DNA of 64,000 nt, from sequence record MT708547.1; one strand, written 5' to 3'. How positions within the stretch are numbered: position 1 is the stretch's first letter; each line of letters starts with the position of its first letter. Under the pieces are notes generated by a model, which had not been told where the DNA came from, searched no databases, and was given only the letters and a program-made list of their open reading frames with translations. The translations under genes were made by a program, and so were the position numbers. Below are positions 1 to 64,000 of the stretch, in pieces.

Positions 1-69
1 TATATTATTAGTGTAGTAGTACTTTCTGTTTTGGTTGGTATTGTATTACTGAAAGGTGTAACGTATACA

Positions 70-357
70 ATGTCTAAAATAGACAAGTACCAGGAAAATT
101 CAGTAATCGATTTGTTTATTGATTACCCAAAAAGCATCATTGCTTTTCTGTTTGTTATGGTACTGATTGGTTTTTATATGGTATCTCATCAAATTGGAGA
201 AATGTACACTTGTGCCATCCGAAGTAGTTCACAGAATGTAGAAACCGAATATAGTTGGTATTTTGATAAATGTCGCTTCAAAAATAAAGATGGTGCATGG
301 GTAGATATTGATCGTTTATTGGGTATGCCTGATGGCAAAGAACATGAACAACAATGA
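70..357 (+). CDS. hypothetical single-pass membrane protein
   Basis: ATG at 70 inside the track ORF; hydrophobic stretch SIIAFLFVMVLIGFYMV. Confidence 0.7.
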   Translation: MSKIDKYQENSVIDLFIDYPKSIIAFLFVMVLIGFYMVSHQIGEMYTCAIRSSSQNVETEYSWYFDKCRFKNKDGAWVDIDRLLGMPDGKEHEQQ

Positions 358-868
358 ACATAAATTCTTCATAGAGCCAGAAGATGAAATAGACTATTTT
401 GATGCAATAGACAGTACTGAAGATGGATATACACATATCAATATATATAGTAAAGGTAAAACTAAATTAGGACGCGATTTATCTAATTTTAGTCCCTATA
501 GTTTTACGCTTGAACCATATGGATGGTTTCCATCAGTAGAGTCATTTTATTTCTGGTTTTTAACTGGACAAAAACACCATGAGCTACGTAAGCTCTCTGG
601 GGCGGCAGCTAAGGCTGCTGCGGAAAAGTATACCAATGACAGGCTTGAGATGAATGAGGAGCGTCTTGGTGTGATACAGGCCGCTATTTGTGCCAAGATA
701 GTACAGAACCCCGACTTAGCAGAGCGTTTAAAGAAAAGTACATTAGCTTTTAAGCATTATTATTGTTATGGTACTAAAGTAATAAACGTGGAAGATGAAC
801 ATGGGTGGTTTGTTCAAACAATCGAAGATATAAGGACTGTATTAAAAGAAGGAGATGAACATGAATAA
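344..868 (+). CDS. NADAR-superfamily-like phage protein
   Basis: HINIYSKGKTKLGRDLSNF...FPSVESFYFW...LSGAAAK and VIQAAICAKIVQNPDLAERL resemble NADAR (YbiA-like) motifs; recognised from memory. Confidence 0.55.
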   Translation: MNNNEHKFFIEPEDEIDYFDAIDSTEDGYTHINIYSKGKTKLGRDLSNFSPYSFTLEPYGWFPSVESFYFWFLTGQKHHELRKLSGAAAKAAAEKYTNDRLEMNEERLGVIQAAICAKIVQNPDLAERLKKSTLAFKHYYCYGTKVINVEDEHGWFVQTIEDIRTVLKEGDEHE

Positions 869-2056
869 TACACAGTTTGAATCATTTGATATAGAGAGTA
901 TATTAAAACCAACTGATAACTGTACTGTACTTATGAATATGTACTGGATAGTCAAAGATGAAAAAGTCTTTAGATCATTGCGAACTAAAGTATGGCAATG
1001 CAATAAATTTGAGAGTGTAGTTAAACATGTAATCGAATCTTATCCTGGTTGTGAGGTTCGTTTTCTTGAATATGCTTATGTAAAGAAGGATTGATTATGA
1101 AATATTATATGGTAACGGAAGGTGATTCGAGTGGTATTCATTTTTTATGGTCTTATTATGAATTACTTGACTGTTGCACCGTAGAAGATGCAGAAGATTT
1201 ATACAGAGAAGAAAATGGATATTCACTGGATGCACCTTATGGATTGAGAATTTATAGTAAAGAAATTACAGAAAAAGAATATCATGATGGATTGCATTTT
1301 AACGATTATTATGGTGTTAGAACGCTAATTACCGAATTGATGTTTAAAAATAACATTTTCCCACTAAAAAGTTGGGCTTTAATGTTTGCAAATCCAAAAA
1401 AACCTGTTAGAATAGGGTTTCCTGGTTCACATCTAGTCTATCGTATGAATGATAAACGAGAGCTTAGCTACCAGTATGATTATGATTCACATAAGTTTGG
1501 TCTTCTACCAGCATTTAAAGGTTTGACAAATGAGTAAAGATTCATTAGAATTTATTTTACGTTGTGATTGTGGTGAAAAATCAGATCATGTAATTCACAT
1601 TGCACAATACGATCTAGACGAAGAGTACGGTGATAATAAACTTGGCACTTGTTTAATCAGTGCTCGTTTAGAACCATGTAAAACATGGTATGAACGTGTT
1701 TGGATTGGTATCAAATACATCTTTGGTTACAATAGTTATCAGTATATGGATACAATGGTTGATGTTGATATCCTACGTGAAGTAGTACAACAGTTAAAAG
1801 ATGAACGTTCAGAAGAAGACAAAAAAGCTTCTCGTGAAAAACGCTCAGAGGTTAAGGTTCTATGAGTGTGTTATTTGAAAAGAAATATTGTACTAAATGC
1901 TTGACAGCTTATACAATTCAGGGTATGATTTGTTGCTCAAACTGTCAAAGCACAGATGCTCAAACGTTTTTGGTTGATGATCGTTACACCGATTTAATTC
2001 AATTCAAAGCGAATCGAAATTTAAAACATTTTAGTGCTTTACACGACAAAGATTGA
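855..2056 (+). CDS. four overlapping hypothetical ORFs (855-1094, 1091-1537, 1530-1865, 1862-2056); the last is a CxxC...CxxC zinc ribbon
   Basis: Head-to-tail tiling with stop/start overlaps; YCTKC...CSNC in the last ORF. Confidence 0.7.
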
Positions 2057-2066
2057 ATGCTATAAT
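2038..2066 (+). promoter_or_regulatory. sigma70-like early promoter
   Basis: TTTACA-17-TATAAT upstream of AGGA and the ATG at 2102. Confidence 0.65.
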
Positions 2067-2101
2067 CATCTTAACTTAAACAAAAACAGGAATTACTTTA
2101 T

Positions 2102-2593
2102 ATGACTAACGTTAATACCAATCTAGTAACTGATATCAAAAAAGTTATTACTTCTCATCATTTCTTTGCACCAGAAAAACAACGAGTCATCTCTGATATC
2201 AAAGAAGATGAACTTAGTATTATTATTCGTTTTAAAGAACCTGGTGATGAAATTTCATCACAGTTCACTGTACTTCGTGGTAAATTCCGCGAAGAAGGCG
2301 TTGACAAGATCCCAGCTTACATTCTTTTTATTACACTTGGTAGTGTAATTAAGCTGGAAATTGATGAAAATCTGGAGCGTTCATATAAATTTATGCTTGC
2401 ACCAGTTACAGATGATGATAACGTTGAACTGGATTTCAAGAATGATTTCACTGAAGAAGAATTCTTTCAGCAAAGTACAATCCATGATTTCCGTTCAGTA
2501 ACTTATGAACACGTCGAACTTATCAAAGATATGATTGAACCAGTTACCAGTTACGAGAAATATCTCGATGGTCAAGCTGAAGGCAACGAATAA
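2102..2593 (+). CDS. hypothetical protein, FQxS-motif paralog family
   Basis: C-terminal FTEEEFFQQSTIHDF. Confidence 0.8.
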   Translation: MTNVNTNLVTDIKKVITSHHFFAPEKQRVISDIKEDELSIIIRFKEPGDEISSQFTVLRGKFREEGVDKIPAYILFITLGSVIKLEIDENLERSYKFMLAPVTDDDNVELDFKNDFTEEEFFQQSTIHDFRSVTYEHVELIKDMIEPVTSYEKYLDGQAEGNE

Positions 2594-2598
2594 AAATA

Positions 2599-2624
2599 AA
2601 TAACCCACTTCGGTGGGTTATTTT
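2599..2624 (+). terminator. intrinsic terminator
   Basis: AATAACCCAC-TTCG-GTGGGTTATT followed by T residues, right after the stop codon. Confidence 0.85.
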
Positions 2625-2643
2625 CTATATAAGGATATAAATT

Positions 2644-3201
2644 ATGTTAAAAGAAATTCAAAAATTAACAAATTCAATTGTAGATTTTCTTAAAGATAAA
2701 AATGGTTTTAGTACTGAAGTATCAAAACAGGGTGTTCAGTTAATCGTTAAAAGTCCTAATGGTACTGAAACTTTGTATGATGTTTATGAATTGCTTTTAT
2801 ATAAACTTAGTGCTAATAAACTAGGTGGTGATATTCAGTTAAACATTAATGATAGTACTGAGGGTAAGATTTTTGCAATTAACACGAATGTAAATTTTGA
2901 TATACATTCTAAAATCCTCGAAATTAATAATTCATTTGATGATTTCAAACACGACACCATTCGTGGTGTTTTTGTTAGTACTCAATTATCTGAAAGTACA
3001 AATCCGTTTTCGGTACTAACTATGTATAAAAATGGTACATGGGTTCGTTACGATTTAACACTGTCGGAATTACTGTACGCTTGTGTAAATGGGTATAAAT
3101 TACAATTGAACGATTCAGGTTTTGTATACAATGAATTACGTGAATTGTGCGAAAATGTAAAAAAAGAAATGAAGCAAGAAGAAAATACAATATCCAAATA
3201 A
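2644..3201 (+). CDS. hypothetical protein
   Basis: 185-aa ORF with AAGGA ribosome-binding site. Confidence 0.7.
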   Translation: MLKEIQKLTNSIVDFLKDKNGFSTEVSKQGVQLIVKSPNGTETLYDVYELLLYKLSANKLGGDIQLNINDSTEGKIFAINTNVNFDIHSKILEINNSFDDFKHDTIRGVFVSTQLSESTNPFSVLTMYKNGTWVRYDLTLSELLYACVNGYKLQLNDSGFVYNELRELCENVKKEMKQEENTISK

Positions 3202-3217
3202 TGAGGTAGATCTCTGT

Positions 3218-3640
3218 ATGACATTACATGAAGTACTGAATAGTTTCTTTGAATTGAATATTTCAGAAATGAAAACCAAACAAAATAGACACCAACATAG
3301 TGTTTGGTATGATGCCCAACCACAACCGTTTTTAATCAATTTTAAAGAAACAGAAACATACACAATAATGAGATTTCATCATTTTGATGGTGAAAATAAT
3401 TACAGGGTATCATATGATGCAGGAACTGATCGACTGATTTACACAGTAATGGGTACCATTTCATCAACCATTACGATTGGAAACTTCTCTTCTTATAAAT
3501 CAGAAGATAATTTTTTTCAGGATTCACTGATTAATGATTACAATGATTTATCATTCGAAGATATTGACAAAATGATGAATATGTTCTATAATGTAAAAAA
3601 TACAAGTTTATCCCTATTTGGTGAAGATGATGAAATTTGA
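3218..3640 (+). CDS. hypothetical protein, FQxS family
   Basis: SEDNFFQDSLINDY. Confidence 0.75.
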   Translation: MTLHEVLNSFFELNISEMKTKQNRHQHSVWYDAQPQPFLINFKETETYTIMRFHHFDGENNYRVSYDAGTDRLIYTVMGTISSTITIGNFSSYKSEDNFFQDSLINDYNDLSFEDIDKMMNMFYNVKNTSLSLFGEDDEI

Positions 3641-4067
3641 TTTAGAAAAATTTCTGGATTTGGATTTAGATTCATTTTATATCAGAAAGTTTATTTTTAA
3701 ACCACACACAAATGTGGTTGATTATGCTGTGATTGAACTACATGAATCGGATTATACAATTTGGTACGATGTTGATGATTGTATTCAACTAAAGGAATGT
3801 GATGAATGTAAAGGTTATGTTCTGTTGTATGACCTCAATACAAATGAAATTACATTAAAAACTTCACATTATGATGAATACGGTATTATAACAAGACGTG
3901 AATGTGTTGCATTTTCACATGATGATTACACAGAAGAATCATTTTTTATGATTAGTACCTTACATGATGTTGGGGAATTTACATTTGAAACTTTCGATAA
4001 ATTTAATAAAATTTTGAAAAAGATTAAATCAATGATCAAGGAAATTGAAAATGAACAGTCCAAGTAA
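3630..4067 (+). CDS. hypothetical protein, FQxS family
   Basis: YTEESFFMISTLHDV. Confidence 0.75.
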   Translation: MKFDLEKFLDLDLDSFYIRKFIFKPHTNVVDYAVIELHESDYTIWYDVDDCIQLKECDECKGYVLLYDLNTNEITLKTSHYDEYGIITRRECVAFSHDDYTEESFFMISTLHDVGEFTFETFDKFNKILKKIKSMIKEIENEQSK

Positions 4068-4464
4068 ATGTTATATTGTTATTCGTAATGATTTGGATAT
4101 GCCAGAAGGTAAATTTGGTGCACAAATCGGTCATGGCATCGACGCAGTATGGAAAGAGGTTTTGGTAGCCGGTACAATGGTGCGTGCTGCAAATATAGCC
4201 AATGAACAACCAAAAGAGCGTGATATCAAAATACAGGATGAAATTTCTAAATGGGTGAGTGACGGTAGTAGAAAGATTATTCTAAAAACAAAATCAGAAG
4301 ACGAATTACTGAAAATTTATAAAAAGGTATTGTCTGAAGGTTGTATTTGTACTAAAATTTATGATTATGGATTTAATTTTTTTGATGGTTTAACTTTAAC
4401 TGGTATTGTTGTACATCCATGTTCAGAAGAAATTAAAACATTAAAACGAGTACGCTTATGGTAA
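4051..4464 (+). CDS. pth2: peptidyl-tRNA hydrolase, Pth2 type
   Basis: KCYIVIRNDLDMPEGKFGAQIGH (family pattern K.V.VVR.DL.M..GK.AAQ..H), W...GSRKIILK, and IYDYG (I.DAG). Confidence 0.85.
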   Translation: MNSPSKCYIVIRNDLDMPEGKFGAQIGHGIDAVWKEVLVAGTMVRAANIANEQPKERDIKIQDEISKWVSDGSRKIILKTKSEDELLKIYKKVLSEGCICTKIYDYGFNFFDGLTLTGIVVHPCSEEIKTLKRVRLW

Positions 4465-4832
4465 ATGAACATTTAAAAGAATTATGTTCTTTATGGAAAT
4501 CATCTGATGTAAGATTTGAACCTGTACCCAAAAATAAAGATAACTGGCATAATTCTATTGTTATGGGGTCTGGTGGTTTTTTTCTTTTACCTATGGTACT
4601 AAAAGATAAAAAAATAGGTATTGTTGTTTTATACAATGATCTTATATATTATTTTTTGTACGAAGATGAAATTCAGTACGTACATAATAATATGACACAT
4701 ACATACAAAAGAGATACCACACATGAAGAACTATTCCAACTAAGTACTTTATACGATGAAGTAATTCAGTACGAAAACTTAATAGAAGTTTTTAACTTAT
4801 ATGATTCCGTAATGGAGGTAATTGAAAGATGA
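4458..4832 (+). CDS. hypothetical protein, FQxS family
   Basis: TTHEELFQLSTLYDE. Confidence 0.75.
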   Translation: MVNEHLKELCSLWKSSDVRFEPVPKNKDNWHNSIVMGSGGFFLLPMVLKDKKIGIVVLYNDLIYYFLYEDEIQYVHNNMTHTYKRDTTHEELFQLSTLYDEVIQYENLIEVFNLYDSVMEVIER

Positions 4833-5170
4833 TGAGTCATTGTAAATTCTGGCTTCCTGTTATGGTTGTTCTGTTTATTATTTTTACAGTAGTAAACTAT
4901 AAAATCCACAATTCTATCCCAAGACAGCCTACAGCAGAAGAATTAGCTATTCATCAAAATAGTGGTTTATATGCTGAAGTACTCAATAAAATCAAAAACA
5001 AATGTACTGGTATCAGTGATAATGAAAAGAATACATTTTATACATGTGAAGATGGTTCTAAAGTATCAGTGATTTACTGGAAACGTCAAGAAAGAACTGG
5101 GTATGTCACTCGTGATTTTGATAAGGATGGTAAATTAATTTCAATTTATGGACACCCAGATGATATCTAA
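4829..5170 (+). CDS. hypothetical membrane-anchored protein
   Basis: N-terminal hydrophobic segment FWLPVMVVLFIIFTVV. Confidence 0.7.
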   Translation: MMSHCKFWLPVMVVLFIIFTVVNYKIHNSIPRQPTAEELAIHQNSGLYAEVLNKIKNKCTGISDNEKNTFYTCEDGSKVSVIYWKRQERTGYVTRDFDKDGKLISIYGHPDDI

Positions 5171-5612
5171 AGAACAACATAAATTTTTATTCAAAATATT
5201 GAATTCTTATAAAGTTAATAAGTTCAGTACTAAACACGTTCACAATCCAAAAATTATTATTATCACAAGGCGATATATAGGAAATAACAGATTTGAAATA
5301 CACTTATATAAAGGAACTATTTCATTAGAAATTCAAAGATATGGTATTATTTTATTATTAATTGAGTATAATCCAATTTCTGACAATATGACATTATTAT
5401 TCAATGATAATGAACATTGTTCTGAAATCGTTTATCGTATAAACGATGTGTCGGAAATTCTTGAAGAAGATGGTTATTTTCAACAAAGTCTTGTACAAAA
5501 TCTTCCATTGGAATATAATGATTTTTGTAAAATGATGGATGATATCACAACCATCAAAAATTCAATGCTGGAACGTTTTGAGTTAACAGAGCAAGTGTGC
5601 GACAATGACTAA
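5160..5612 (+). CDS. hypothetical protein, FQxS family
   Basis: EEDGYFQQSLVQNL. Confidence 0.7.
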   Translation: MISKEQHKFLFKILNSYKVNKFSTKHVHNPKIIIITRRYIGNNRFEIHLYKGTISLEIQRYGIILLLIEYNPISDNMTLLFNDNEHCSEIVYRINDVSEILEEDGYFQQSLVQNLPLEYNDFCKMMDDITTIKNSMLERFELTEQVCDND

Positions 5613-6475
5613 AGTAGTTAGAAAGCGTAGAGTACTGGATAATGATGAATTCAAATCATTAGAGATTCATCGTCAATTGTTTCACCGTCTTTGTGCTGGT
5701 GAGAAACAAATTGTAGTTACTGAAACATATGAAGAACCAGAAAATATTTTCGGTAACTATTTCCCTGTATTCAATTTGTATATTAAACGCGGTCTATTGG
5801 AAGTAATTACAATAGATCAGTTACCGGAAGATGAACATGAATTTACTGTTATCAAATAAAGAACCATTAGATCGTGATGATGATTTTTATGATGAACGTT
5901 ATGGTGAATCGGAGGAATAAATGGGATTAGATATCTATAAATGTAAAATTAGTTCTACTAAACAAGAACATGGTTTTATTACATGTTCACAAGAAGAGAT
6001 TGATTCAAATAAATCAATTAAAGAACTATTCCAGAAATATAAAAATTATATCAATATCGGCACTGAAGAATACATTGATATTGAACAAAGTTTAATCAAA
6101 TTTAATCTTTCTGATGAATGGTTTTTATCTGGATATGAGTTCAATGAAGATGAGGATTCATATTATGCAGTATTTGATTGTACTCTACCATTGTTCGATT
6201 CCGTAAAAGTATTATATAATGAACTCATCACAAAAGATGAAAAAGTTTATACATTATATTACACAGAAATTGGCTATCAACGTAGAGATTATAAACCCGG
6301 AATCTATGCTGATCTTTGGGGATGTGACCATGAAGAACACGACGGATATTACAGCTTAAATGTTGTAACAGATAATTCAGTACTTGAACTTGTTAAAATG
6401 TATGCGAATGAAAATTCTCCACTTAGTCAATGGGTACTAAACGATAATGATGAATTTATTATCTTCGATTATTGA
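5605..6475 (+). CDS. hypothetical ORFs 5605-5859 and 5921-6475, plus a possible 29-aa acidic ORF at 5831-5920
   Basis: Tiling ORFs; GGAGG before the ATG at 5921. Confidence 0.65.
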
Positions 6476-6511: not shown

Positions 6512-7399
6512 ATGAAACCTATTACAGTACTGTCATTATTCAATGGGATGAGTGTTGGGTATATGGCACTAAAGAATGCTGGAATTCCAGTACAGAAATA
6601 TTACTCATCAGAAATTGATAAATTTGCTATTGCTGAATCACAAGCCAACTACCCTGATATTATTCAGTTAGGTGATATAACTAAATGGGAAGATTGGGAT
6701 ATCGACTGGGGTAGTATTGACCTACTTATTGGTGGAAGTCCTTGTACTGATGTAAGTTTTGCGGGAAAACAAGAGGGGTTAGTGAAACCAGATGAAAACG
6801 GTGATGGTGGAACACGAAGTGGTTTATTTTATATAATGATTGACATATTCAATCATATTAAATCGATAAATCCAGATTTAAATTTTTTATTTGAAAATGT
6901 CAAGATGAAAAAAGAACATCTTGAAGAATTTAATAATAATATAGGGGTTGATCCTGTTCTAATCAATTCTGAATTATATACTGCTCATTACAGACAGAGA
7001 TATTACTGGATTAGCTCAAATAAGCTAATTCTCAATCCCACCTACGAAGCCCCCGTACTTCAAGATATTATTGTTAATGCATATACTGACAGGAATAAAT
7101 CATATTGCATTGATGCCAATTACTGGAAAAAGGGGAACATTAAACAGTACTTACACAAATCAAGAAGACAGATTGTTTATCTAAGAGACGATCATGATTT
7201 ATTCAGTACTGAAGAAAAAATTAACACATTTAAACTTAATGTTGATTATCGACATTTAACAGTAGATGAAGTATGTTTATTACAGGGTGTACCTGTTGGA
7301 TTTTTTAAAGTAAGTAGTACAACACAAGCATACAAAATGCTAGGTAATGGATGGACATGTCCAGTTATTGAACATCTATTAAAGGAAATTTTCTTTTAA
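6512..7399 (+). CDS. dcm: DNA (cytosine-5) methyltransferase, orphan
   Basis: Motif I LSLFNG, EID, motif IV GGSPC, motif VI FENV, motif VIII RQRYYW, motif X YKMLGNGW; AAGGA 5 nt before the ATG at 6512. Confidence 0.92.
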   Translation: MKPITVLSLFNGMSVGYMALKNAGIPVQKYYSSEIDKFAIAESQANYPDIIQLGDITKWEDWDIDWGSIDLLIGGSPCTDVSFAGKQEGLVKPDENGDGGTRSGLFYIMIDIFNHIKSINPDLNFLFENVKMKKEHLEEFNNNIGVDPVLINSELYTAHYRQRYYWISSNKLILNPTYEAPVLQDIIVNAYTDRNKSYCIDANYWKKGNIKQYLHKSRRQIVYLRDDHDLFSTEEKINTFKLNVDYRHLTVDEVCLLQGVPVGFFKVSSTTQAYKMLGNGWTCPVIEHLLKEIFF

Positions 7400-8971: not shown

Positions 8972-13191
<4,220 letters not shown>

Positions 13192-16987: not shown

Positions 16988-17083
16988 GTGGGTGTGGCGG
17001 TATTGGTTGTACGCAAAGGTCTTAAAAACCTTCAGAGGGCTTAAAATGCATTCCTCTTGTGAGTTCGAATCTCATCACCCGTA
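16988..17083 (+). tRNA. trnL: tRNA-Leu(TAA)
   Basis: Acceptor GTGGGTG/CACCCGT; anticodon stem AAGGT/ACCTT with loop CTTAAAA; 26-nt variable arm; T arm GTGAG-TTCGAAT-CTCAT; A73; no encoded CCA. Confidence 0.9.
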
Positions 17084-17112
17084 CTCATTAAATAGTCAAT
17101 GGATTGACACAA

Positions 17113-17931: not shown

Positions 17932-17947
17932 TAAATATAATAACAAA

Positions 17948-18023
<76 letters not shown>

Positions 18024-18028
18024 AATTC

Positions 18029-19266: not shown

Positions 19267-19294
19267 TTGAACAAAAAGTTCAGTACTGTATAAT
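19267..19294 (+). promoter_or_regulatory. promoter for tRNA-Arg
   Basis: TTGAAC-aaaaa-GTTCAGTACTG-TATAAT. Confidence 0.7.
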
Positions 19295-19640: not shown

Positions 19641-19771
<131 letters not shown>

Positions 19772-19829: not shown

Positions 19830-19888
19830 AAATTTTAATTTAAATAGTACTTGACAAAAATATTCAGTACTGATACATAAAGAATATT

Positions 19889-31396: not shown

Positions 31397-31399
31397 GTT

Positions 31400-35230: not shown

Positions 35231-35928
35231 ATGAGGTATATTATGTTTACTCCAAACACATCAAATGTAGGTAAGCGTGTAGTACTGTTAGAAGATGTAT
35301 CAACACTTCGTGGGACTTTCAGTAAAGGTCACGAGATGACCATCATCGGAGAAACGTCACGTGGTTGGGATCTCGAAGATGATGATGGTAATCGCATTTT
35401 AGAAGCTGGGATGTTTGGTCATAAAGAATTTAAACTACTTGACTAAATTATTCAGTACTGAAGTATAATTTTTGTTGTCTTAACGTGAGGAAATAAAATA
35501 TGATTAAAGCTGGTGTATTTGCACTCGGTGTTATGGTTGGTGGTTTTGCTCATATGTTTTATGTTGATCATAAAGCACTTGAACCTGCACCATTTGTTGA
35601 AGTACAGAAGGAATCTGTTGGTAAATAAAAATTAAATCATCAAGGTAATATACATAGTGATTGACAAATAATAGCAGTGCTGCTAATATAAGAATAAGAC
35701 GGGGTGATAAATTAACATTAACCTTAATCGATCAACAGGTGGCTGCGGTTATCATCCCGTCTTTCCTTTTTAACAATGAGGTTTATCATGAGTAAAGATG
35801 TTCACGTTCCAGTACAAAATGGTATGTCAGCATGTGGTAAACGAGTAGATTTAACTGGTTGGGTACGTTCGATGATCACTTGTAAAAAATGCAAAAAAAC
35901 CAAAGAGTATTTTGATTTGGAAAAATAA
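35231..35928 (+). CDS. small ORFs 35231-35446, 35500-35628 (hydrophobic) and 35788-35928 (H/C...CxxC zinc-binding)
   Basis: GAGG ribosome-binding sites; the last two are below the track length cutoff. Confidence 0.6.
35696..35763 (+). ncRNA. promoter-driven small RNA closed by a 15-bp stem
   Basis: TTGACA-17-TAATAT (35661-35689), then AAGACGGGGTGATAA/TTATCATCCCGTCTT and a T tract. Confidence 0.55.
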
Positions 35929-36186: not shown

Positions 36187-36230
36187 AATAAAAGATTGAC
36201 AAATAATATTAGTACTGTATAATGTTTACA

Positions 36231-53770: not shown

Positions 53771-54077
53771 AATAATCATCTGAAAAACCATTTTAATTTG
53801 AGGTATATTATGTCACGTAAAGTTCTTATCAATCGTTTAGCTGAAGCCCTGAATTGCAAACCGCATGAGATTCCTCATGTTAATGAACTGACCAGTAATC
53901 AAATATACTGGATGATTCAACATGAACGTATGCATAAACGCTATGGTGATTTATATCGTTCAAAATGATCATATAAAAGATATAATAATTAATCCAGTAC
54001 TGACTATTGTGTTATCATATTTGTAGTATTCGAATTGATTTATTTTATAATAAACTCCGTTAAAAAATAAATTATAT

Positions 54078-54113
54078 AAAAGGGTTGACTTTGGTCAGCC
54101 CTTTTGTTATTAT
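54078..54113 (+). promoter_or_regulatory. terminator/promoter hairpin cassette 11
   Basis: AAAAGGGTTGAC-TTTG-GTCAGCCCTTTT; TTGACT-17-TATTAT. Confidence 0.8.
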
Positions 54114-54142: not shown

Positions 54143-55435
54143 ATTATGATTCGTTATGCTCTGCGTCATAGAACTTCCAAACAGTACGTTGGATTTCGTA
54201 CTGTGCCATGGGAATTTGGTACTGATATTCATTTGGATTTCGATGATGATTATATTTGGTTGAAAGAAGATCGCACATTAATGGATACACTTATTGAAAA
54301 TAGAAAGTCAAATGATGCATCGTTACAATTGAGTGATTCAGTACTGAAGGCGTTAAAAGATTATAAATTAGAAGTGATGGAAATTAATTTCCCAGATACT
54401 GATTGGTGGGATGATTAATGATTGTGAAAATACAATTTTAATTTCATAAACTAAATTATCTAAAGGTGAAATAATGCAATACTCTATCTATGCTCGTATG
54501 GGAGTTGATTATGAATGGAACAGACTTCGTACAGTGTACAATGAAGAGAAAGCAATTGAACTGAAAGAGTATTACGAACAAACATGGCGTATCGTTGAAA
54601 TTCGTAATGAAAGCAAATAAGCGTTGACAACATATATCAGTACTGTATAATATATACAATCTTAATCGAAAAAGGTAAAACAAAAATGAAAGTTACTCTG
54701 ACTGGTGGTACAATCAATGTAGCAACAATCAAATCAGTACTGGAAAACAATAGCCGAGTATATATTTCACTTCCAATTAATGATGTTTGTGAAATTTTAG
54801 TAACTCGTTTGGAATCACATTTTAACGGGTATATCAAACAAGATAGTATTGAAGTTAAATTCGCCGAACGAGATTGTGGTGAAATCCAGTGTATGGCAAC
54901 AGAATACTTTAACATCAATATGATGGAAAAAGCTGCAATGGCTGCCGTTGAGCGATATAATTCAGAAGATCCATGTGAATTTTCTAATTATTCAGTGGCA
55001 TTTGAAAATACATTTATTAAAGAATAACAAAATGAAGTCATACCTTTTCCTATAATATAGTATTACTAAAATAGAGAATATTGTATGAAACTCGATTATG
55101 AATTAATAAGCAAAACGTTTAAATTAATATATTTTATTTTTGGTTATAGTAAAAATTCTAATTTTTTTCCAATATTATTTGACCTTGATGAAAATGATAT
55201 TCACCAAGAATACAATAAAATATTGAATCGAGAGTTACATTTATCAATTAAAGAATTAGTAATTAATAAGTATATTCATTATAAAAATAAAAATTTTGAT
55301 GGATATTTGCAAATTATTGGATATGATTTTGATACATCGAAATTAATAGTAAAGGCACCTAATAATACGGGAATTTTCCAAATAACTTGGGCGAATTTAA
55401 AAATTTTTGACAGTATACCATCAAAAAAAGGTTGA
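54143..55435 (+). CDS. hypothetical ORFs about 54143-54418, 54686-55027, 55085-55435, plus sub-60-aa ORFs near 53810 and 54474
   Basis: Ribosome-binding sites; promoter TTGACA-16-TATAAT at 54624-54651. Confidence 0.6.
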
Positions 55436-55488: not shown

Positions 55489-55560
55489 ATGCATCCTCGT
55501 TTAGTTAGAAGTCAGAAAATCCAGAAAAACTTCGATTCAATGCTCGCAGTACTTACATAA
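55489..55560 (+). pseudogene. orphaned duplicate of the 5' end of the AAA+ ATPase gene (23 aa)
   Basis: AAGGAGAAATAAAA-ATG; MHPRLVRSQKIQKNFDSMLAVLT* versus MHPRQQRSLQIQKNFESMMAVLE at 56630. Confidence 0.8.
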
Positions 55561-56527: not shown

Positions 56528-56629
56528 TTTATTAAATCCTTTTAGATTTCTTTGTAAAAATGTATTTAGGTCTTGACTTTATTGGGGAATCATAGTAAGA
56601 TGTTCAACATACAGTTAAGGAGAAACAAA

Positions 56630-57400
56630 ATGCATCCACGCCAACAACGCAGTCTTCAAATCCAGAAAAATTTTGAATCAATGATGGCCGTACTGGAAAG
56701 TATGCTAGTTCCTAATAGCTCGATAAACAGTATGGTGATTTCAGGCAGTCCTGGTATTGGTAAAACCTACTCCCTGTCTAAACGTCTGGATAAAGCTCAT
56801 GCTCAAGCTGAATGTAATGTAACTACGGTTAGTGGTAAAATGACTACCCTAGCACTTTTCGAAGTACTGTACAAAAACCGGTTCAGTACTAATATTATTG
56901 TACTTGATGATATGGACAGTATTTTTGATTCAGAAGATGGTATGAATCTGCTCAAAGCAGTACTTGATACGTCAAAACGTACAGTATCATATATGTCATC
57001 TTCTAAGTACTTAAAAGATAATGGTATCCCAAGTACTTTTGATTTTTTTGGTAAAATTGTATTCATTACAAATAAAGATTTAACTCGTATTGCTGCATCC
57101 AAAAGCAAACAAGCACCACATTGTCAAGCTTTGATTTCTCGTTCAGTGTATATTGATCTTGAAATTCAAAGCAAAGAAGATATCATGATTCATATCGAAA
57201 ATGTTATGCTCAGTACTAATATTCTTGAAAAATATAATGTTAATCAAAATGGTAGTAACATGATTCTTAATTGGATGCTGAAACACCAGGAACGTCTACA
57301 GTCTCCATCATTACGTACACCTGTACTTATTAGTGCTCTGTATAATTCCAATCCATATGATTGGGAAGAAATTTGCGAAAATGTTTATCTGGAGAAATAA
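56630..57400 (+). CDS. AAA+ ATPase
   Basis: Walker A GSPGIGKT, Walker B IIVLDD, LLKAVLD; AAGGAG before the ATG at 56630; promoter TTGACT-17-TAAGAT at 56574. Confidence 0.85.
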   Translation: MHPRQQRSLQIQKNFESMMAVLESMLVPNSSINSMVISGSPGIGKTYSLSKRLDKAHAQAECNVTTVSGKMTTLALFEVLYKNRFSTNIIVLDDMDSIFDSEDGMNLLKAVLDTSKRTVSYMSSSKYLKDNGIPSTFDFFGKIVFITNKDLTRIAASKSKQAPHCQALISRSVYIDLEIQSKEDIMIHIENVMLSTNILEKYNVNQNGSNMILNWMLKHQERLQSPSLRTPVLISALYNSNPYDWEEICENVYLEK

Positions 57401-57714
57401 TGAAATACAAATGTACGGTGTATAAAGAAGGAATTGTATTCATTGAAGTCTATGTAGATGATGATATTTGGTTTGAAGTTGATGAATGTTTTGATACAAA
57501 TGTATACGTATCAAAAAATGGATATATCTATGAATATAATTTAAATCACGATTTTGGTTCAATGCAAGATGATGAACTATTTCAAATGAGTACTGTAATT
57601 TCTATTCCTTTTGATTTAAAAATCATTAGAGAAGCCCATAAACAATTCAGTACTATTATAAAAGAAAATTCATCATTATTGTATCATTATATTTTAGTAA
57701 CAGAGGACGAATAA
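57400..57714 (+). CDS. hypothetical protein, FQxS family
   Basis: QDDELFQMSTVISI. Confidence 0.7.
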   Translation: MKYKCTVYKEGIVFIEVYVDDDIWFEVDECFDTNVYVSKNGYIYEYNLNHDFGSMQDDELFQMSTVISIPFDLKIIREAHKQFSTIIKENSSLLYHYILVTEDE

Positions 57715-57844
57715 TGAAACCAGAACAATGGATCATCGATGATATGCGTGCTATGCGTAAGATTGAAAATAAATCATACGAAGAACAAGCATACTTAGAT
57801 CTTCTTCAATGGTATGTAAAAGTAATTCAATCTAAGGAATAATT

Positions 57845-60607
57845 ATGTTAGACTTTATGCTAAAAAGTGAACTATCACATACTATTGGGTATAGTATTGC
57901 AGTACTAATCGTATTCAGCTTTCTGTTTGAAAAAATCAATTGGCTATTCAAAACCAATATCTATAAAAAGTATTATAAAGTTAAAAGTTTTGACAGACAA
58001 TTCTTTTTGGGTATAATGTATACATTAACATTATATTGTAGTGTATTTGAAATTGGATTTGTACTGGCTGATTTACCATTTACTTTGTACTTTTTATTGT
58101 ATACAGTCTTTGTTATACCATTTTCTTTGTATATTTTTTGTACTAAAGTGTTCGATAAAATTATTGAATTCCGAAATAAACTACCAGACTGATATGGAGT
58201 AATATAAATGATTGAGTTTATATTCAAAAGTGATTTCGCATATAGTGTTGGGTATTGTATCTTTATTGCTATTATTTTTAATTACTTATTTGAGAAAATT
58301 AATTATTTTTTTAAGACTAATATTCACAAAAAGTATTATACAAACAAGAGCAGTAAAAGAAAAAACATTGAATTCACTCTGTATATTAGTACTATATATC
58401 TGGTAACAATTGAACTTCCTTCAGTACTAACTGATAAAAATGTAACAATGCTATTTTGTGTATATAGTGTAGTGATTATCTTCTTTTGTGTATATTATAC
58501 AATCAAAGCATTGAATCAAAAATTAACTGAATTCCATAATAAACTACCGGATTAATTAAAAATGAATGAATTTCTACGAAGTGAACTATTGTGCTCAGTA
58601 CTACAATGCTTTTTGTTGTTATTCATTGTGTACCATTTGTATATTTTAGTACTATGGTACTTTAAACGTAAATCGTATTTGACATTATGGCAAAACAATA
58701 AGTTAGCAGTTCCATTTCTTACTACTACAACAATAGCTTATGCTCTTTCCGGGATTTTCCTGTTTCCAGTAGATGATCCTGTAATGCAAGAAAGTGGGAT
58801 AGCAATTGCTAATCTTATTAGATCACTGTTCATTAGTGCATGGTTTTTCTTTGTATTAATCAGGTACTTAGTGCGTTTACGTACTAAAATCGAAGGGGCA
58901 TTCTAAAATGCTGGAGTACATTAATCTGTTTGATACATCATTTGTTATAGTTAGTACTTATTATATTTGTAGTACTATTTTTTACTTTCTGATGTGGTTC
59001 TTTAAACGTAAACTGGATAACTTCATTAAGCAATATTCGTTACAACTGGCATTACAATTGTATTACTGGATTGGATTTGGTTTAATGTATTTGCATTACT
59101 ATTTTGTATTATATAATATCCGTGAAAATAATACATTTATGCTTTATATGCTACAAATTATCGGTACTACAATCTATGTAGGTTATCTAATGTCGATTGT
59201 ATTGTCAAAATTAAGAAACAAAATCCCTGATATGAGGAATTAAAAAATGACATATATTTTTATTGCATTAGCAATGTATTACTGGATTTCGTGGACTGGA
59301 TATCTCTTTGCATTGAAATCTTTTGATTATTTCAGTGCTTCCTGTAAAGAAAGTTGGGGGTGGCATGTATTAGCAACTTCGTCAGTAACATACTGTGCTT
59401 ATGAAAGTATTACAGATAAAACATTCAATGATATAGTATTAAGTACAGTACTGATGTATTTGTGGGTGTTTGCATTTATTGTTCATATTTCACCTTTAAT
59501 TAGAGATAAAATTGTAAAATTTCATAATAAACAAAAGGAAAAACGTGCATGATCCTTACATTAAATTTACTGACATTTTTTAGTGTATTAACGTGTTTAA
59601 TCTTTATTGGAAAATTCTTTTGTGTTAAAATAGCAGAGAAGATTTATGATTCATGGGAAAATGAAATGGCTTTATGGGTTCCTATATTCTGGACTGGCAG
59701 TAATGTATTTTTAATTCCAGCCTGGATTGGTGCAACAAAGGAAATCGTCCCACTTTTTTTATTCAGTGCAGTATTCAGTGCTGGTTTTTGTTTAATGTAT
59801 GGGGTATTTGCATTGATTGTTGCATTAGTACCTGCATTAAAGAATCTGCATGTAAAAATTAAACTCAAGAAATCACAGGGTAAATTATGACTTACAGAGA
59901 TTATTTTTGTATATTCGAATTACTGGTTTTTACTTCAGGTAGTTTAGTATTATTATTGTATTATTTTTGTGTTGAGCCTTTTTACAAATTATTAAAACCA
60001 AAAACTGAAATGGGTGTATTTTGTTTATTTCAGTTTATGTATTACTATTTTCTGTCTATTCTTTCTGTTGTTGTAGAAGTAATTTTCGGAGGATTTGTTA
60101 ATGCAGACAAAATGCCGTCATACGAGTTGTTTACAATCTTCAATGTACTTATGATTGCTTTAATTGTGTTCGTTTCAATTCTTGCTGGAATTTACAAATT
60201 TTTTGTATTCCTTGGTAACAAACACAATGATATAGTACTAAAACGAAAAGGAACACTGACAGATGAACGTAATTGAAATAATTGTAGTTGCATACCACAT
60301 TTTAGCAGTACTTCTTATTTTATCTGTTCTCGTGGATTATGCATTAGGATTTGATAAGCTTAAATTTGTATATCAGTACTTTGATGATAATTTCGATAGT
60401 GATAATCCGGTACATGTATTTCTTGGATTAGAATTCATGTGTTTAATTCTTGTACTGTTTATCCCTATTATCGGTACAGGAGCATCTCTTTTCTTTATTA
60501 CTGCAATTACATTATTGTACTTCGTAGTAATAGTTCTCATTTTAGTACTGTATTCTGTTGCGTATGGAATAGAAACAATTAGAAATAAACGCCTGTCAAA
60601 AAAATAA
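57845..60607 (+). CDS. tandem array of eight small multi-pass membrane proteins (57845-58192, 58208-58555, 58562-58906, 58908-59243, 59247-59552, 59549-59890, 59887-60276, 60263-60607)
   Basis: Each 101-129 aa with about three hydrophobic helices; the first two are clear paralogs (LFEKINxxFKTNIxKKYY...EFxNKLPD). Confidence 0.8.
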
Positions 60608-60664
60608 AAAATAATTCCTGAACTTGACAATGCGGGATTTTTTATAAAATAATAGAGGCACAAA

Positions 60665-61252
60665 ATGAAACGCATAACTCGCAGCAAAAATGTGATCAGG
60701 GATAGATTTCGCAAGGTAAACATTATTAAGTACAGTACTATTGCATTAGCATTAAGTACTACATTCGTATTATCTGCTTGTGATGAACCGACTGACGTTC
60801 AAGTATATAAAACACTTGAACAATGCAAAACTTCTGGAAAAAATCCAGCACAATGCGAAGAAGATTACAAAAATGCCCTGAAACAAAGTGTCAGTACTGC
60901 ACCGCATTACAAATCACAAAGTGAATGCTATGCAGACTTCGATACAGTTTGTCAGGAAGGTCATTACAGTACTGGTGGTATGTTCTTCTATCCAATGATG
61001 ACGGGATTTCATAGTTCAGGTCAAGGATATCATTCACAACCTTTATATAGTCATAAAGGTAATTACGTTGATGCTGGTGGAAACAATTACGGTTCAACTT
61101 TTAGTACTACCACTAACAGAACTGTACCAAGATCCGGTCTAACACAAAAAGCACCAACCAGCACTATCACAAGAAGTGGATTTGGTAGTACTGTTTCAAG
61201 TCGTAGCTTTTCAAGTTCTCATAGTTCATCAAGCCATTCATTTGGTGGTTAA
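60665..61252 (+). CDS. DUF1190 (YgiB/YjfM-like) lipoprotein
   Basis: LSACDE lipobox; VYKTLEQC...CEEDYKNA...APHYKSQSECYADF; TITRSGFGSTV. Confidence 0.85.
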   Translation: MKRITRSKNVIRDRFRKVNIIKYSTIALALSTTFVLSACDEPTDVQVYKTLEQCKTSGKNPAQCEEDYKNALKQSVSTAPHYKSQSECYADFDTVCQEGHYSTGGMFFYPMMTGFHSSGQGYHSQPLYSHKGNYVDAGGNNYGSTFSTTTNRTVPRSGLTQKAPTSTITRSGFGSTVSSRSFSSSHSSSSHSFGG

Positions 61253-61269
61253 ACAATAAAGGAAAATAA

Positions 61270-61902
61270 ATGAAATATTCAAGCCTGAATCTTTATAATA
61301 ATCCAGCAGTCGCTACTCATGCAATCACTGGTAGTATCAATGATTCTTCTTATAAAGAATTCCGTGAGTTCATCAAGGCAGTACTGGAAAATAATCAAAA
61401 AATCGCCGACGAAGAACGTATTCATAAAGAAAAGGAAGAATTTAATAAAATTCATAACCCAGAAGCTAAACCCGAATTCTTTAGCCCTAAAACTAAAGTA
61501 CAACGTATTAATCTTATCGTAGATTCATATGGCGGTCAATGTTCTTCTATGACCAGTATTGTTGCACTAATGAATAGTTCTCCTATTCCTATTGATACAT
61601 ATTGCTTCGGTGCTGCCATGTCAGCAGGATTTATGATTTTTATTCATGGAAAAAATCGTTATGTAGGTAATGCAGCAGACCTTATGATGCATAGTTTAAG
61701 TACTGGTGTATATGATCACGCACCTGGTATTAAATCAAAAGCTGAACATCTGCTGAAAATCAATACAGTCTATCAACAAATGGTAGCAAATAAAACTGGC
61801 CTTACAATGGAATGGCTTAAAGAGCACGAAGAAAAGGATATGCACTTCCTTGCAGATGATTGTATTGAATACAAAATTGCAGATGCAATCATTGAGGAAT
61901 AA
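61270..61902 (+). CDS. clpP: ClpP-like protease subunit
   Basis: INLIVDSYGG; CFGAAMSAG (catalytic Ser); LMMH (catalytic His). Confidence 0.85.
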   Translation: MKYSSLNLYNNPAVATHAITGSINDSSYKEFREFIKAVLENNQKIADEERIHKEKEEFNKIHNPEAKPEFFSPKTKVQRINLIVDSYGGQCSSMTSIVALMNSSPIPIDTYCFGAAMSAGFMIFIHGKNRYVGNAADLMMHSLSTGVYDHAPGIKSKAEHLLKINTVYQQMVANKTGLTMEWLKEHEEKDMHFLADDCIEYKIADAIIEE

Positions 61903-61905
61903 TAT

Positions 61906-62511
61906 ATGACAATATTATTCAGTACTAAAGATCCGGTAGGCGATTCTAGTAATGTAGTTAGTAACTTCTACAATCATGTTCGTCGTAAGACACATCATGG
62001 TTCATGGGGTGCTGATAAACATGCACGTAAGCTATTCCCGAGGGGAAAAGCGTATGATCGTCTGTTTGAATTACAATTGGATTGTTGGAAAAACCGCTAC
62101 GATTATTTCTAAGAGAATACTATGACTACACAACTAACCGATGATGGTCCGATTACTGTACAAGTACTGTTTTCTTTTGTACAAGCTACCAAAGATGAAC
62201 TACCAGCACTCTTTGTTTGCACTGCGGAGTACTTAGAAGCTAACGAAGAGACTGACAATGACATTACGCCAGATCAATTCCATGATATCTTTGAAGCTGG
62301 TGAACCAAAAGATGAAGATGATTGCATCTTCTACTACGTCAAAGGTTCTACACGCTTCCGCTTCTATGACATGGGCTATGGTACATGGGGAATTGAAGAA
62401 TTGAAAGATGGTGAGTATGATTGCGTAGGTGCGGTTGATGAGAAAGCATTGATGGCTCTACTCGGACAAGCTGGCCTCGTAAAAGATGATTCATTGATCC
62501 AGTACTTCTAA
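61906..62511 (+). CDS. hypothetical ORFs 61906-62112 and 62122-62511 (very acidic)
   Basis: Ribosome-binding sites; the second is D/E-rich and visibly higher in GC. Confidence 0.7.
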
Positions 62512-62514
62512 AAT

Positions 62515-62550
62515 AAAGGGTTGACTTCGGTCAGCCTTTTTTGTTATTAT
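62515..62550 (+). promoter_or_regulatory. terminator/promoter hairpin cassette 13
   Basis: AAAGGGTTGAC-TTCG-GTCAGCCTTTTTT; TTGACT-18-TATTAT. Confidence 0.8.
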
Positions 62551-62580
62551 AACAGTACTATATCAAAGAGGTAATTAATA

Positions 62581-63180
62581 ATGAAAAAAGTCAAAAAATT
62601 ATACAAAGATTGGTACAACAAAATTAAACAACAACATTTAACAAAAAAACGTAACCCACAATATACCTATGTGTTTAACTGGACTTTCAAATCTTCTGAT
62701 AGTATGAAAAAGATTAAACCAGGTGATACATTCAAAACTGCTAAAGTACTAAAAGTATTTCTCAGAGCCAATAATATCTATCTCAATGAAGTAGGATGGA
62801 ATAATAGAGGGAAAATTACCTGCACTAATAAAATTAAATCAGCTACCTTTGATGTATATATTAAAGATATTCCGTGCTCAATTATGATAACCTTTGCCGG
62901 AGTATCTATAATCACCAATTATCATAAACATAAAAAAAATAATACATTAGAAAATTGTATTGCATATCATGCACCTAATGATATCTTTATACACAATTAC
63001 CAAAAACATAAAGAATTAAACATCGATTACAATAACTTAACAGAAGAAGAAATATTTCAACTAAGTACAGTACTTGATATCGATTTCTATAAAACCATCA
63101 AAAATATAGGAACAGAACTGTACAACACACAAAACCTAAACTGCAATAAACTCGTAGCAGTACTAAACAAATACAAATAA
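62581..63180 (+). CDS. hypothetical protein, FQxS family
   Basis: YNNLTEEEIFQLSTVLDI. Confidence 0.8.
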   Translation: MKKVKKLYKDWYNKIKQQHLTKKRNPQYTYVFNWTFKSSDSMKKIKPGDTFKTAKVLKVFLRANNIYLNEVGWNNRGKITCTNKIKSATFDVYIKDIPCSIMITFAGVSIITNYHKHKKNNTLENCIAYHAPNDIFIHNYQKHKELNIDYNNLTEEEIFQLSTVLDIDFYKTIKNIGTELYNTQNLNCNKLVAVLNKYK

Positions 63181-63318
63181 AACCAATGAAGGATTTAAGT
63201 AAATGATCATCCAAATCAATAGTTATAAAACAAAAGAAGAACTGACCACCATTATCATTAAAGCTATTCAAAAAGGGGAAAGTTCAAAATTCCATTAGAT
63301 AAAACAAGCAATCGTAAT

Positions 63319-63756
63319 ATGGTTATTTCTCAAATTGATAAAGATTTTGATATCAATATATGCTATATGGAAGAAACCAGTACAGATATCATCTACTCAG
63401 GTACTGAATCATTTAAACCAGACCAAATCATTACAGCAGCGGATAATTGCGTCCAACGTTATTTCAGTACTGAACCAAATAAAACAATCAGAGAACAACA
63501 AAAATATAATACACGAAATATGCAAGAAGTAGAAAAACATAGTAAAAACTTCCCCGGTGGTATGACCGTTAAAGAATTAAAAGAATTAATTAAAGATTGG
63601 CCTGAAACCAATCAGTACGGAGAAGATACTTTAGTCTATATCAGTACTGAATCAGATACGGATTGTACTGTACATTCTTCGTGGTGTTCATCAGTAAGAA
63701 CAGATGATAACGGTGTACTTGTATATGATCTGACACTTGATACAGAACAAAGATAA
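63319..63756 (+). CDS. hypothetical protein
   Basis: 145-aa ORF, the last in the window. Confidence 0.65.
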   Translation: MVISQIDKDFDINICYMEETSTDIIYSGTESFKPDQIITAADNCVQRYFSTEPNKTIREQQKYNTRNMQEVEKHSKNFPGGMTVKELKELIKDWPETNQYGEDTLVYISTESDTDCTVHSSWCSSVRTDDNGVLVYDLTLDTEQR

Positions 63757-63764
63757 TTAAAAAG

Positions 63765-63804
63765 ACTCCCCGTAAAACGTGATCAAACGGATTCTACGGG
63801 GAGT
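63765..63804. terminator. GC-rich inverted repeat (terminator or DNA hairpin)
   Basis: ACTCCCCGTA-20 nt-TACGGGGAGT. Confidence 0.55.
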
Positions 63805-63857
63805 ATAATATATTGGACGATATGTCCATTATAATAGACGATTTAATGGATATAGGT

Positions 63858-63990
63858 GATTCAGTACTGATAATAATGAATAGGAATTGATAAGAATAGT
63901 ATAGTACTAATAATAATGAGTAGGAATTGATAAGAATGATTCAGTACTATTAAGAATGATTAAGTACTATTCAGTACTATTCAGTACTGA
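63858..63990. repeat. iteron-like tandem repeat with six AGTACT sites phased at multiples of 10 bp
   Basis: Units of 40, 40, 20, 10 and 10 nt; AGTACT starts at 63863, 63903, 63943, 63963, 63973, 63983. Confidence 0.85.
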
Positions 63991-64000
63991 TATGCCACTA

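Follow-up and report, generated by a model that had tools for sequence, protein, structure and literature searches.

The genome of Klebsiella phage Muenster (MT708547.1, 346,937 bp), a RaK2-like jumbo phage of the genus Alcyoneusvirus, contains the palindrome AGTACT at 12-14 times the expected frequency. We put at about 0.55 the probability that a dimeric DNA-binding protein recognises AGTACT as the centre of a dyad-symmetric site, TTCAGTACTGAA, which would act as the operator of immediate-early promoters and also have a density-dependent role throughout the genome. The most likely source of this protein is the phage itself, and it would be common to the RaK2/121Q-like clade of enterobacterial jumbo phages. 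Its binding, repression by it and the purpose of the dispersed sites are what we infer from the statistics of the word, selection on it at the DNA level, its symmetry, the geometry of promoters and arrays, the density map and conservation across genera.

The stretch of DNA that was analysed (the window, 64,000 nucleotides) is identical to positions 282,938-346,937 of the record, the final 64 kb of the Muenster genome; window positions 30000-36000 were placed at 312,937-318,937 with 100% identity by megablast. Coordinates below are those of the window unless given as record positions. The record is annotated with a 'terminal repeat region predicted by PhageTerm' at 1-20,030, and the boundaries used here are those of that prediction. 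Since the 20,030-bp direct terminal repeat is written only once in the record, a copy of it directly adjoins window position 64000 in the virion or concatemer. Coding analyses are based on our own open reading frame calls for the whole genome (560 genes, 90% coding), and the close comparison genome is that of phage K64-1 (97.9% identity across 307 kb).

Selection on AGTACT as a DNA word

The window contains 193 copies of AGTACT, whereas 100 dinucleotide-preserving shuffles of it average 13.8 +/- 3.6 and never exceed 23; the whole 347-kb genome has 949, against 79 expected (ratio 11.95), which is one copy per ~365 bp. Of all 4096 hexamers, none is more over-represented than AGTACT, CAGTAC and GTACTG. 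An order-4 Markov model expects 172 copies in the window, which comes near the real figure only because the pentamers AGTAC and GTACT inside the word are enriched in their own right. The initial annotation, whose hand counts of 10 copies in 1-6000 and 38 in 57500-64000 are exact, had reported a strong excess that is real and larger than it claimed. Longer forms rise more steeply: CAGTACTG, which accounts for 49 of the 193 window sites (of these 193, 48% have C at -1 and 50% have G at +1), occurs 237 times genome-wide against 3.0 expected, TCAGTACTGA 78 times against 0.35, and TTCAGTACTGAA 35 times against 0.04. Eight of the nine classes of one-mismatch variants are also raised, 1.3-3.6 fold, the sole exception being AGGACT/AGTCCT (0.57); such a mild excess is as expected for weaker sites.

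Thirteen other palindromic hexamers, each expected 11-80 times, have no copy at all in the genome: CTTAAG (80 expected), GCATGC (31), CTGCAG (26), TGCGCA, TCCGGA, AGGCCT, CCTAGG, GAGCTC, CGATCG, GCTAGC, CGTACG, TCGCGA and AGCGCT. The median ratio of observed to expected counts for the other 63 palindromic hexamers is 0.58. AGTACT, showing none of the restriction-site avoidance that is usual for 6-bp palindromes in lytic phages, is the one strongly selected exception in an otherwise palindrome-purging genome, and the remark of the initial annotation that its excess is the opposite of the norm holds within Muenster itself. The zero-copy palindromes are a strong footprint of restriction avoidance, which could be matched to the restriction systems of Klebsiella.

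A dense site amid purged palindromes would be safe if it were modified, and there is a small likelihood that a DNA-modifying enzyme of the phage acts on AGTACT, the dense modified sites serving as an epigenetic self-mark, for example against a nuclease of phage or host or for recognition in packaging or repair. Besides a C5-cytosine methylase, the genome encodes a Dam-family methylase and a Mom-family enzyme. However, no ScaI-type methylase, which would be an N4-cytosine enzyme, is annotated, the published sequence context of Mu Mom does not fit CAGTA, and the fixed 20-bp promoter pairs described below would be left unexplained. The C5 enzyme (6512-7399, plus strand) has the catalytic domains of mammalian Dnmt3A/3B as its nearest solved relatives (E value about 3e-22), which fits the methylated CpG reported in the RaK2 paper; AGTACT contains no CpG, and this Dnmt3-like methylase was rejected as the reader of the site. 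The resistance to many restriction enzymes reported in the same paper speaks for modification.

Most of the sites (778 of 949, 82%) are within open reading frames and, as the initial annotation had noted, in different frames: all three are used (AGT-ACT 422, xxA-GTA-CTx 265, xAG-TAC-Txx 91). A synonymous-codon shuffle that keeps the protein and the codon usage of each gene yields 250 +/- 12 copies in the genome against the 778 observed (z = 43), and 48 +/- 6 against 158 in the coding sequences of the window, whereas a shuffle of codon order across the genome yields 127 +/- 11. The enrichment therefore outlasts the codon-preserving shuffle by which the initial annotation proposed that it could be refuted, and an artefact of codon or amino-acid usage is ruled out by the two kinds of shuffle. 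There are 872 Ser-Thr dipeptides where 489 would be expected (Thr-Ser, 500), 820 Val-Leu dipeptides where 517 would be (Leu-Val, 472), and 422 AGT-ACT codon pairs where codon usage predicts 133; because protein sequences are already bent toward the site, the synonymous-shuffle null is itself inflated.

The favoured bases are TTC immediately before the site (-3 to -1) and GAA immediately after it, with nearly identical counts on both sides, in each reading frame and in intergenic DNA, extending the consensus to the 12-bp dyad-symmetric TTCAGTACTGAA. Symmetry between strands is the pattern of a homodimeric DNA-binding protein, not of an RNA signal or a peptide constraint. The flanks are nearly devoid of information beyond +/-3 bp, and the pattern recurs in independent genomes and metagenome contigs, which disposes of a repeat family or an assembly artefact. 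A dyad-symmetric site with a 4-bp centre also fits the geometry of type IIA topoisomerases, and T4-like topoisomerase II subunits are encoded by the genome, so that AGTACT might mark preferred cleavage or binding sites (with a 4-bp stagger centred on GTAC) of an enzyme that untangles a very long genome. This is improbable: type II topoisomerases have loose sequence preferences, unlike an exact hexamer in 12-fold excess, and placement in promoters would not be explained.

Between Muenster and K64-1, 826 of 885 aligned sites are common, and gain and loss are balanced (59 sites in Muenster only, 46 in K64-1 only). Synonymous third positions of the codons AGT, ACT, GTA and TAC have changed in 2.2% of cases inside sites and 4.0% elsewhere (odds ratio 0.55, p = 0.0025), and in the terminal repeat 91.6% of the sites are conserved, versus 79.6% of all hexamer windows there. 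Together, the halved synonymous change, survival of the codon shuffle and dyad-symmetric flanks in every context show that selection on AGTACT acts at the DNA level and not on codons or RNA. Taken with the enriched one-mismatch variants and with the spacing and tail-fibre depletion described below, this pattern suggests that many individually weak sites are kept up to a certain density and accumulate the longer a piece of DNA has resided in the genome.

Promoters, density and genome ends

The distances between sites have a single sharp spike, at 20 bp (24 pairs). Twenty-one of these pairs in the terminal repeat and one in the window belong to promoters of the form aaa-AGTAC-TTGACA-N9-AGTACTG-TATAAT, all of which aim into the downstream gene; site 1 reaches over the upstream edge of the -35 hexamer, and site 2 takes up the spacer as far as the -10 hexamer. 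One such two-site promoter of the repeat lies at record 9697-9735. A small number of pairs, spaced by 22 bp, follow the same logic. Perfect matches to TTGACA-N16-18-TATAAT number 31 in the genome, 30 of them oriented with transcription, and AGTACT is set against the -10 hexamer in 10 of the 13 that lie in the repeat, but in only 2 of the other 17, both of these in the window (Table 1). This difference, together with single-site versions at tRNA genes, indicates that the site marks a distinct class, the immediate-early promoters of the repeat.

The geometry of the 20-bp promoter pairs and of the arrays phased at 10 bp is that of a site for a dimeric protein. The placement in 22 promoters is that of a repressor operator: two dyad-symmetric sites separated by 20 bp, or two helical turns, take in the upstream margin of the -35 hexamer and the spacer beside the -10 hexamer, so that a bound protein would exclude host RNA polymerase. 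The operator pair would time or shut off immediate-early transcription from the 20-kb repeat; a few promoters elsewhere, including the tRNA promoters of the window, have a single site. The proposal of the initial annotation, that AGTACT binds a phage-encoded protein for genome organisation, replication or packaging, is supported indirectly as far as a dyad-symmetric signal in the DNA is concerned, but the strongest link is to transcription, through immediate-early sigma70-type promoters, rather than to replication or packaging.

A simpler possibility, to which we assign only a minor share of the likelihood, is that RNA polymerase, or a sigma factor or appropriator of the phage, reads AGTACT as an intrinsic element of the promoter, the intragenic copies being by-products or cryptic promoters. 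The positions of the site relative to the -35 and -10 hexamers are fixed in 22 promoters, the last T of the site and the flanking G fall at the TG position of an extended -10 element in those promoters whose -10 hexamer is CATAAT, and an RpoD-like sigma factor is encoded in the window. Against this, the 82% of sites that are intragenic have no -35 or -10 hexamer adjacent to them, the flanks are dyad-symmetric rather than promoter-like, the site is missing from 15 of the 17 perfect sigma70 promoters located elsewhere than in the repeat (for example those at 3564, 9507 and 22049), and the distance from site 2 to the -10 hexamer shifts by 1-2 bp while the 20-bp spacing of the pair stays fixed.

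Along the whole genome, 5-kb bins contain ~7-19 sites each versus ~1 expected, with a dip across the tail-fibre genes at 100-120 kb and a rise to 27-47 over the terminal repeat, on a background of ~2.5/kb. At 1-kb resolution, the window is flat at ~2.6/kb to ~56,000-56,600 and then about 5-6/kb, with 44 sites in the 7.4 kb after ~56,600; the repeat has 6-11/kb (about 8 sites/kb), and the density drops to ~2.5/kb exactly at record 20,030. Non-coding and coding DNA have 14.6 and 4.5 sites/kb, respectively, in the repeat, and 2.75 and 2.4 in the rest of the genome. The density profile of K64-1 is the same. The initial annotation correctly placed a denser locus just to the right of the window, which is the terminal repeat, and a greater density of sites toward it; what it described as graded is a flat stretch, a step at ~56,600 and then a plateau of ~27 kb across the genome end, not a gradient.

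Outside the repeat, site spacing is nearly Poisson and slightly even (coefficient of variation 0.83-0.93), close pairs are below expectation, and 70 genes have no site versus 89 expected. Tail-fibre genes are depleted (30 sites versus 50 expected, P = 0.0014), above all those of high GC content, which look recently acquired. Homing-endonuclease genes as a class are not (21 versus 25 expected), so that the lack of AGTACT in the two HNH genes of the window, correctly observed in the initial annotation, is a weak observation (0 versus 3.4 expected); depletion in mobile genes in general fails for the homing endonucleases and holds for tail fibres.

The turnover of the sites, each weakly constrained, and their scarcity in recently acquired genes might also arise if a Vsr-fold endonuclease of the phage made AGTACT from near-matches by a correction resembling very-short-patch repair, with no binding function at all, and the genome has at least five genes for Vsr-like or EDxHD endonucleases. 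Such a mutational drive is disfavoured, and we consider it quite unlikely: very-short-patch repair depletes its precursors, unlike the enrichment of the one-mismatch neighbours observed here, and the 20-bp promoter pairs, phased arrays and step in density at the repeat boundary would be unexplained.

The remaining ~800 copies are intragenic and have near-random, slightly even spacing. That the set is maintained although each site is weakly selected points to a function dependent on density, for which the candidates are roadblocks to, or silencing of, transcription by host polymerase, and the coating, organising or marking of the phage chromosome. Coating, organisation or marking would be densest in the ~27 kb that surround the genome end and are expressed first. 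A bolder version, which has perhaps one chance in four of being right, is a clade-wide, sequence-addressed 'phage chromatin' in which one phage dimer would read ~950 copies of TTCAGTACTGAA, silence the immediate-early promoters and mark, coat or organise the chromosome as self. Self-marking might shield the DNA from nucleases or silence stray host-polymerase transcription on AT-rich DNA, and the selection would be strong enough to reshape phage proteins. A rough estimate from base composition puts the rate of the site in the GC-rich host at about one per 6 kb.

The six-site array at the end of the window stops 12 bp short of the annotated left boundary of the repeat, its last three sites being TTCAGTACT(A/G) in 10-bp phase, and two further sites are found in the first 90 bp of the repeat. 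Past the right boundary (record 20,054-20,150), there are near-variants TTCTGTAC(T/A) phased at ~10 bp, for example TTCTGTACTG, TTCTGTACAC and TTCTGTGCAC. In K64-1 the array has four sites, not six, and ~60 bp around the terminus are kept, bracketed by TTCAGTACTGA. The divergent relative fENko-Kae01 has PhageTerm-mapped repeats of 19.7 kb with 50 genes; its left boundary, like those of Muenster and K64-1, is bracketed by sites, whereas at the right boundary Muenster has only near-variants and fENko-Kae01 no site.

This arrangement raises the possibility that the primary role of AGTACT is at the genome ends, in concatemer cutting, repeat duplication, packaging or the start of replication, and that its density rises toward that locus. 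The phased array just before the left boundary, the sites just inside it, the near-variants past the right boundary and the preservation of terminus-proximal sites in K64-1 and of the bracketed left boundary in fENko-Kae01 are in its favour, as is the AAA+ ATPase that heads the boundary-adjacent operon (56630-57400), which has weak, sub-threshold matches to Orc1/Cdc6 and Hda of the initiator clade. On the other hand, the right boundary of fENko-Kae01 lacks the site, the copy number of the array differs among close relatives, ~950 dispersed copies would be a poor signal for unique cutting or an origin, and the termini are a PhageTerm annotation only. The confidently predicted structure of the ATPase (predicted local distance difference test score 93) is a generic AAA+ fold, with template modelling scores of 0.4-0.55 to DnaA domain III, Orc1, RuvB, RFC and ClpX, and contains no DNA-binding domain. 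Overall, a role at genome ends is possible but not consistently supported, and as the primary role it seems doubtful. The 1.3-kb non-coding left end of the repeat (record ~160-1400) also has several Fur-box-like repeats (AATGATAATGATTCTCATTT), each followed by ACAGTACTGA, as well as three AAAAATCTGGAT repeats and a recurring TTTACAAATCTTTACAAAA element; the Fur-box-like repeats and their companions may be iron-responsive or decoy sites.

Table 1. Features of the window that contain AGTACT (window coordinates; a dot indicates no strand).
Feature	Position	Strand	Remarks
Dispersed AGTACT sites, n=193	1..64000	.	Mostly intragenic, three frames, ~2.6/kb up to 56,600, consensus TTCAGTACTGAA
Sigma70-like promoter TTGAAC-N9-AGTACTG-TATAAT	19267..19294	+	12 bp upstream of tRNA-Arg (19306)
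Sigma70-like promoter TTGAAC-N9-AGTACTGA-TATAAT	19643..19671	+	Upstream of tRNA-Ser (19684)
Two-site promoter AGTAC-TTGACA-N9-AGTACT	19846..19871 (pair 19846/19866)	+	Only copy outside the repeat; in tRNA cluster
Promoter-like TTGACT-N9-AGTACT-N4-TATAAT	35439..35469	+	
Perfect-consensus sigma70 promoter TTGACA-N9-AGTACTG-TATAAT	36196..36223	+	Site abuts -10
Perfect-consensus sigma70 promoter TTGACA-N9-AGTACTG-TATAAT	54624..54651	+	Site abuts -10
High-density rightward operon	56600..63760	+	Left shoulder of dense domain; coding-site density about 5-6/kb, sites intragenic
Intergenic six-site AGTACT array	63857..63988	.	Nested tandem repeats, periods 40, 20 and 10 bp

The tRNA cluster of the window (16988-20370: Leu, Gly, Arg, Ser, Ser, Asn) is broken by the two HNH endonuclease genes. 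The sequence that follows its two-site promoter (ggccccttagctcac...) is tRNA-like, with no ARAGORN call and no annotation in Muenster; RaK2 lists a 'tRNA-OTHER' in the matching region. A relative from wastewater (run X9 contigs) has 33 unrelated bases, which still terminate in a TATAAT-like sequence, in place of 35915-36322 (406 bp, including the promoter at 36196). A repeated module at 44860-44900, 54076-54113 and 62515-62560 consists of a terminator hairpin (GGGTTGACTTCGGTCAGCCC) whose stem holds a -35-like TTGACT, and then a -10-like TATTAT or TATCAT; in two of the three modules AGTACT lies close to where transcription is predicted to begin. These modules look like combined terminator-promoter units.

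The dense operon encodes, besides the AAA+ ATPase, small membrane-protein paralogues, a lipoprotein, a ClpP-like protein and hypothetical proteins. Eight paralogous genes in a row (57845-60607, plus strand), for small proteins with 2-3 transmembrane helices, are inside this shoulder of the dense domain. Diverging from the operon is a lone minus-strand gene (55553-56527) annotated as an endonuclease, with an HHpred match to the AbaSI/PvuRts1I-like family of modification-dependent nucleases, which could be a weapon against competitor phages that contain hydroxymethylcytosine. Five homing-endonuclease genes of the Vsr fold (EDxHD or Hef-like) are found at record 81616-82623, 141793-143796, 241828-243456, 245879-247612 and 265772-267481, one of which separates the two topoisomerase II subunit genes.

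Candidate readers and occurrence in relatives

A host protein with a similar site is the nucleoid-occlusion factor SlmA, which binds GTGAGTACTCAC, a site characterised by G, T, A and G at positions 1, 2, 4 and 5, with a strong preference for G at position 1 and a required purine at position 3 (PMC3020112). DNA-bound SlmA antagonises FtsZ (PMC3020112), and the phage DNA might conceivably hijack it to block cell division, since the two sites share not only the central hexamer but also the T at position 2 and the A at position 11. The flanks, however, rule SlmA out as the reader and leave this idea hardly credible: the phage consensus has T and C at positions 1 and 3, SlmA-type GTR flanks are found at 20 of 1,898 half-sites versus about 56 expected from composition, and the 347-kb genome has just 2 full SlmA sites.

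The system is shared by other jumbo phages. In the capsid-gene region of two uncultivated relatives (80% protein identity), AGTACT is enriched 3-3.5 fold (25 versus 7 and 18 versus 5.7). A search of IMG/VR with AGTACTTGACA-N9-AGTACTG retrieved RaK2 and three other jumbo-phage contigs; in the early regions of these, the two-site promoters recur with other spacer sequences, and stretches of 9-14 kb contain 64-86 sites. At about 80% identity, these contigs align with terminal-repeat or left-end regions in fENko-Kae01, in the Salmonella phages Munch, SE_PL and 7t3, and in jumbo phages of E. coli, Erwinia, Yersinia and Serratia. Because the same promoters and dense sites occur in divergent jumbo-phage contigs, the system is a property of the clade. 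Among ~45 loci at 60-65% capsid identity, there is no enrichment of AGTACT, and no substitute enriched word, as might be expected of a co-evolving pair of protein and site, stands out.

Several points weigh against a phage-encoded dimeric reader acting at operators and genome-wide. A repressor of early promoters alone does not account for the ~800 intragenic copies in middle and late genes, and the individual sites are weakly conserved. Among public sequencing runs, only contigs or unrelated RNA turned up, and no reads of the phage. The CTG flank of site 2 could double as the 'TG' of an extended -10 element in those promoters where the -10 hexamer is one base further away. As for the protein, the early proteins conserved across divergent early regions matched only domains of unknown function and PHROG families of unknown function, and the annotated DNA-binding candidates, an H-NS-like protein and a sigma region 4-like protein, had no informative family match; an early protein encoded in the repeat has an H-NS-type N-terminal domain. 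We nevertheless favour the dimeric reader: each of the alternatives considered above covers part of the picture and fails on another part.

Likeness to known systems

The stoperators of cluster A mycobacteriophages, bound by the L5 repressor gp71, are asymmetric 13-mers, about 25-35 per genome, intergenic and oriented with transcription, through which the single repressor of a temperate phage damps transcription genome-wide. Muenster resembles them in that one short motif is placed at early promoters, as a probable operator, and is also dispersed in many copies throughout the genome, but differs in that the site is palindromic, with ~950 copies, 82% of them intragenic, and the phage is a lytic jumbo phage. 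The histone-like proteins p6 of phi29 and TF1 of SPO1 coat the genome and repress early promoters, reading DNA shape or a modified base. Genome-wide binding, loading near the ends and repression of early promoters would match the density map and promoter overlap in Muenster, where the signal is an exact hexamer rather than shape or a modified base; to our knowledge, no single word is over-represented in the genomes of phi29 or SPO1.

Chi, KOPS and DNA uptake sequences are asymmetric words, oriented with replication and read by known machines. Like AGTACT, they are far above chance, intragenic in all frames, with effects on peptides, and individually dispensable while collectively maintained; unlike them, the Muenster word is palindromic, viral and also present at fixed promoter positions. 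At the pac site of phage P1, clusters of the hexamer TGATCA/G flank the cut, occur at pac alone and work by way of Dam methylation. Such phased copies of a palindromic hexamer around a packaging or terminus cut may have a parallel in the boundary arrays of Muenster, but these are only partly conserved, and the Muenster word is spread through the whole genome. The pre-early region of T5 likewise is a long direct terminal repeat with tiny genes, strong host-type promoters and terminators. We know of no report of a shared hexamer operator in T5, whose DNA is injected in two steps. SlmA, a dimeric helix-turn-helix protein, likewise has dispersed 12-bp palindromic sites with a central AGTACT (PMC3020112), but these number about 50 per 4.6 Mb, versus one per 365 bp in Muenster, and lie outside promoters, whereas the motif is found in Muenster in at least 22 promoters with two sites and in several with one; the G at position 1 and purine at position 3 are disfavoured in the phage.

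No description of AGTACT enrichment or of the two-site promoter design in these phages was found in the searchable literature, which included papers on RaK2, fENko-Kae01 and SlmA, a review of jumbo phages and a study of marine methylomes. The enrichment of one palindrome while others are fully purged is relevant to the inference of restriction pressure or host range from oligonucleotide statistics, and the restriction enzyme ScaI is expected to yield either about 950 fragments or none from Muenster DNA. The phage also provides a rare viral case in which selection on a DNA word visibly alters protein composition. RaK2-like jumbo phages are being developed against Klebsiella, and more than half of their genes have no known function; a single word that occurs every 365 bp, defines a class of immediate-early promoters and is conserved across genera offers a direct way into the regulation of these phages.

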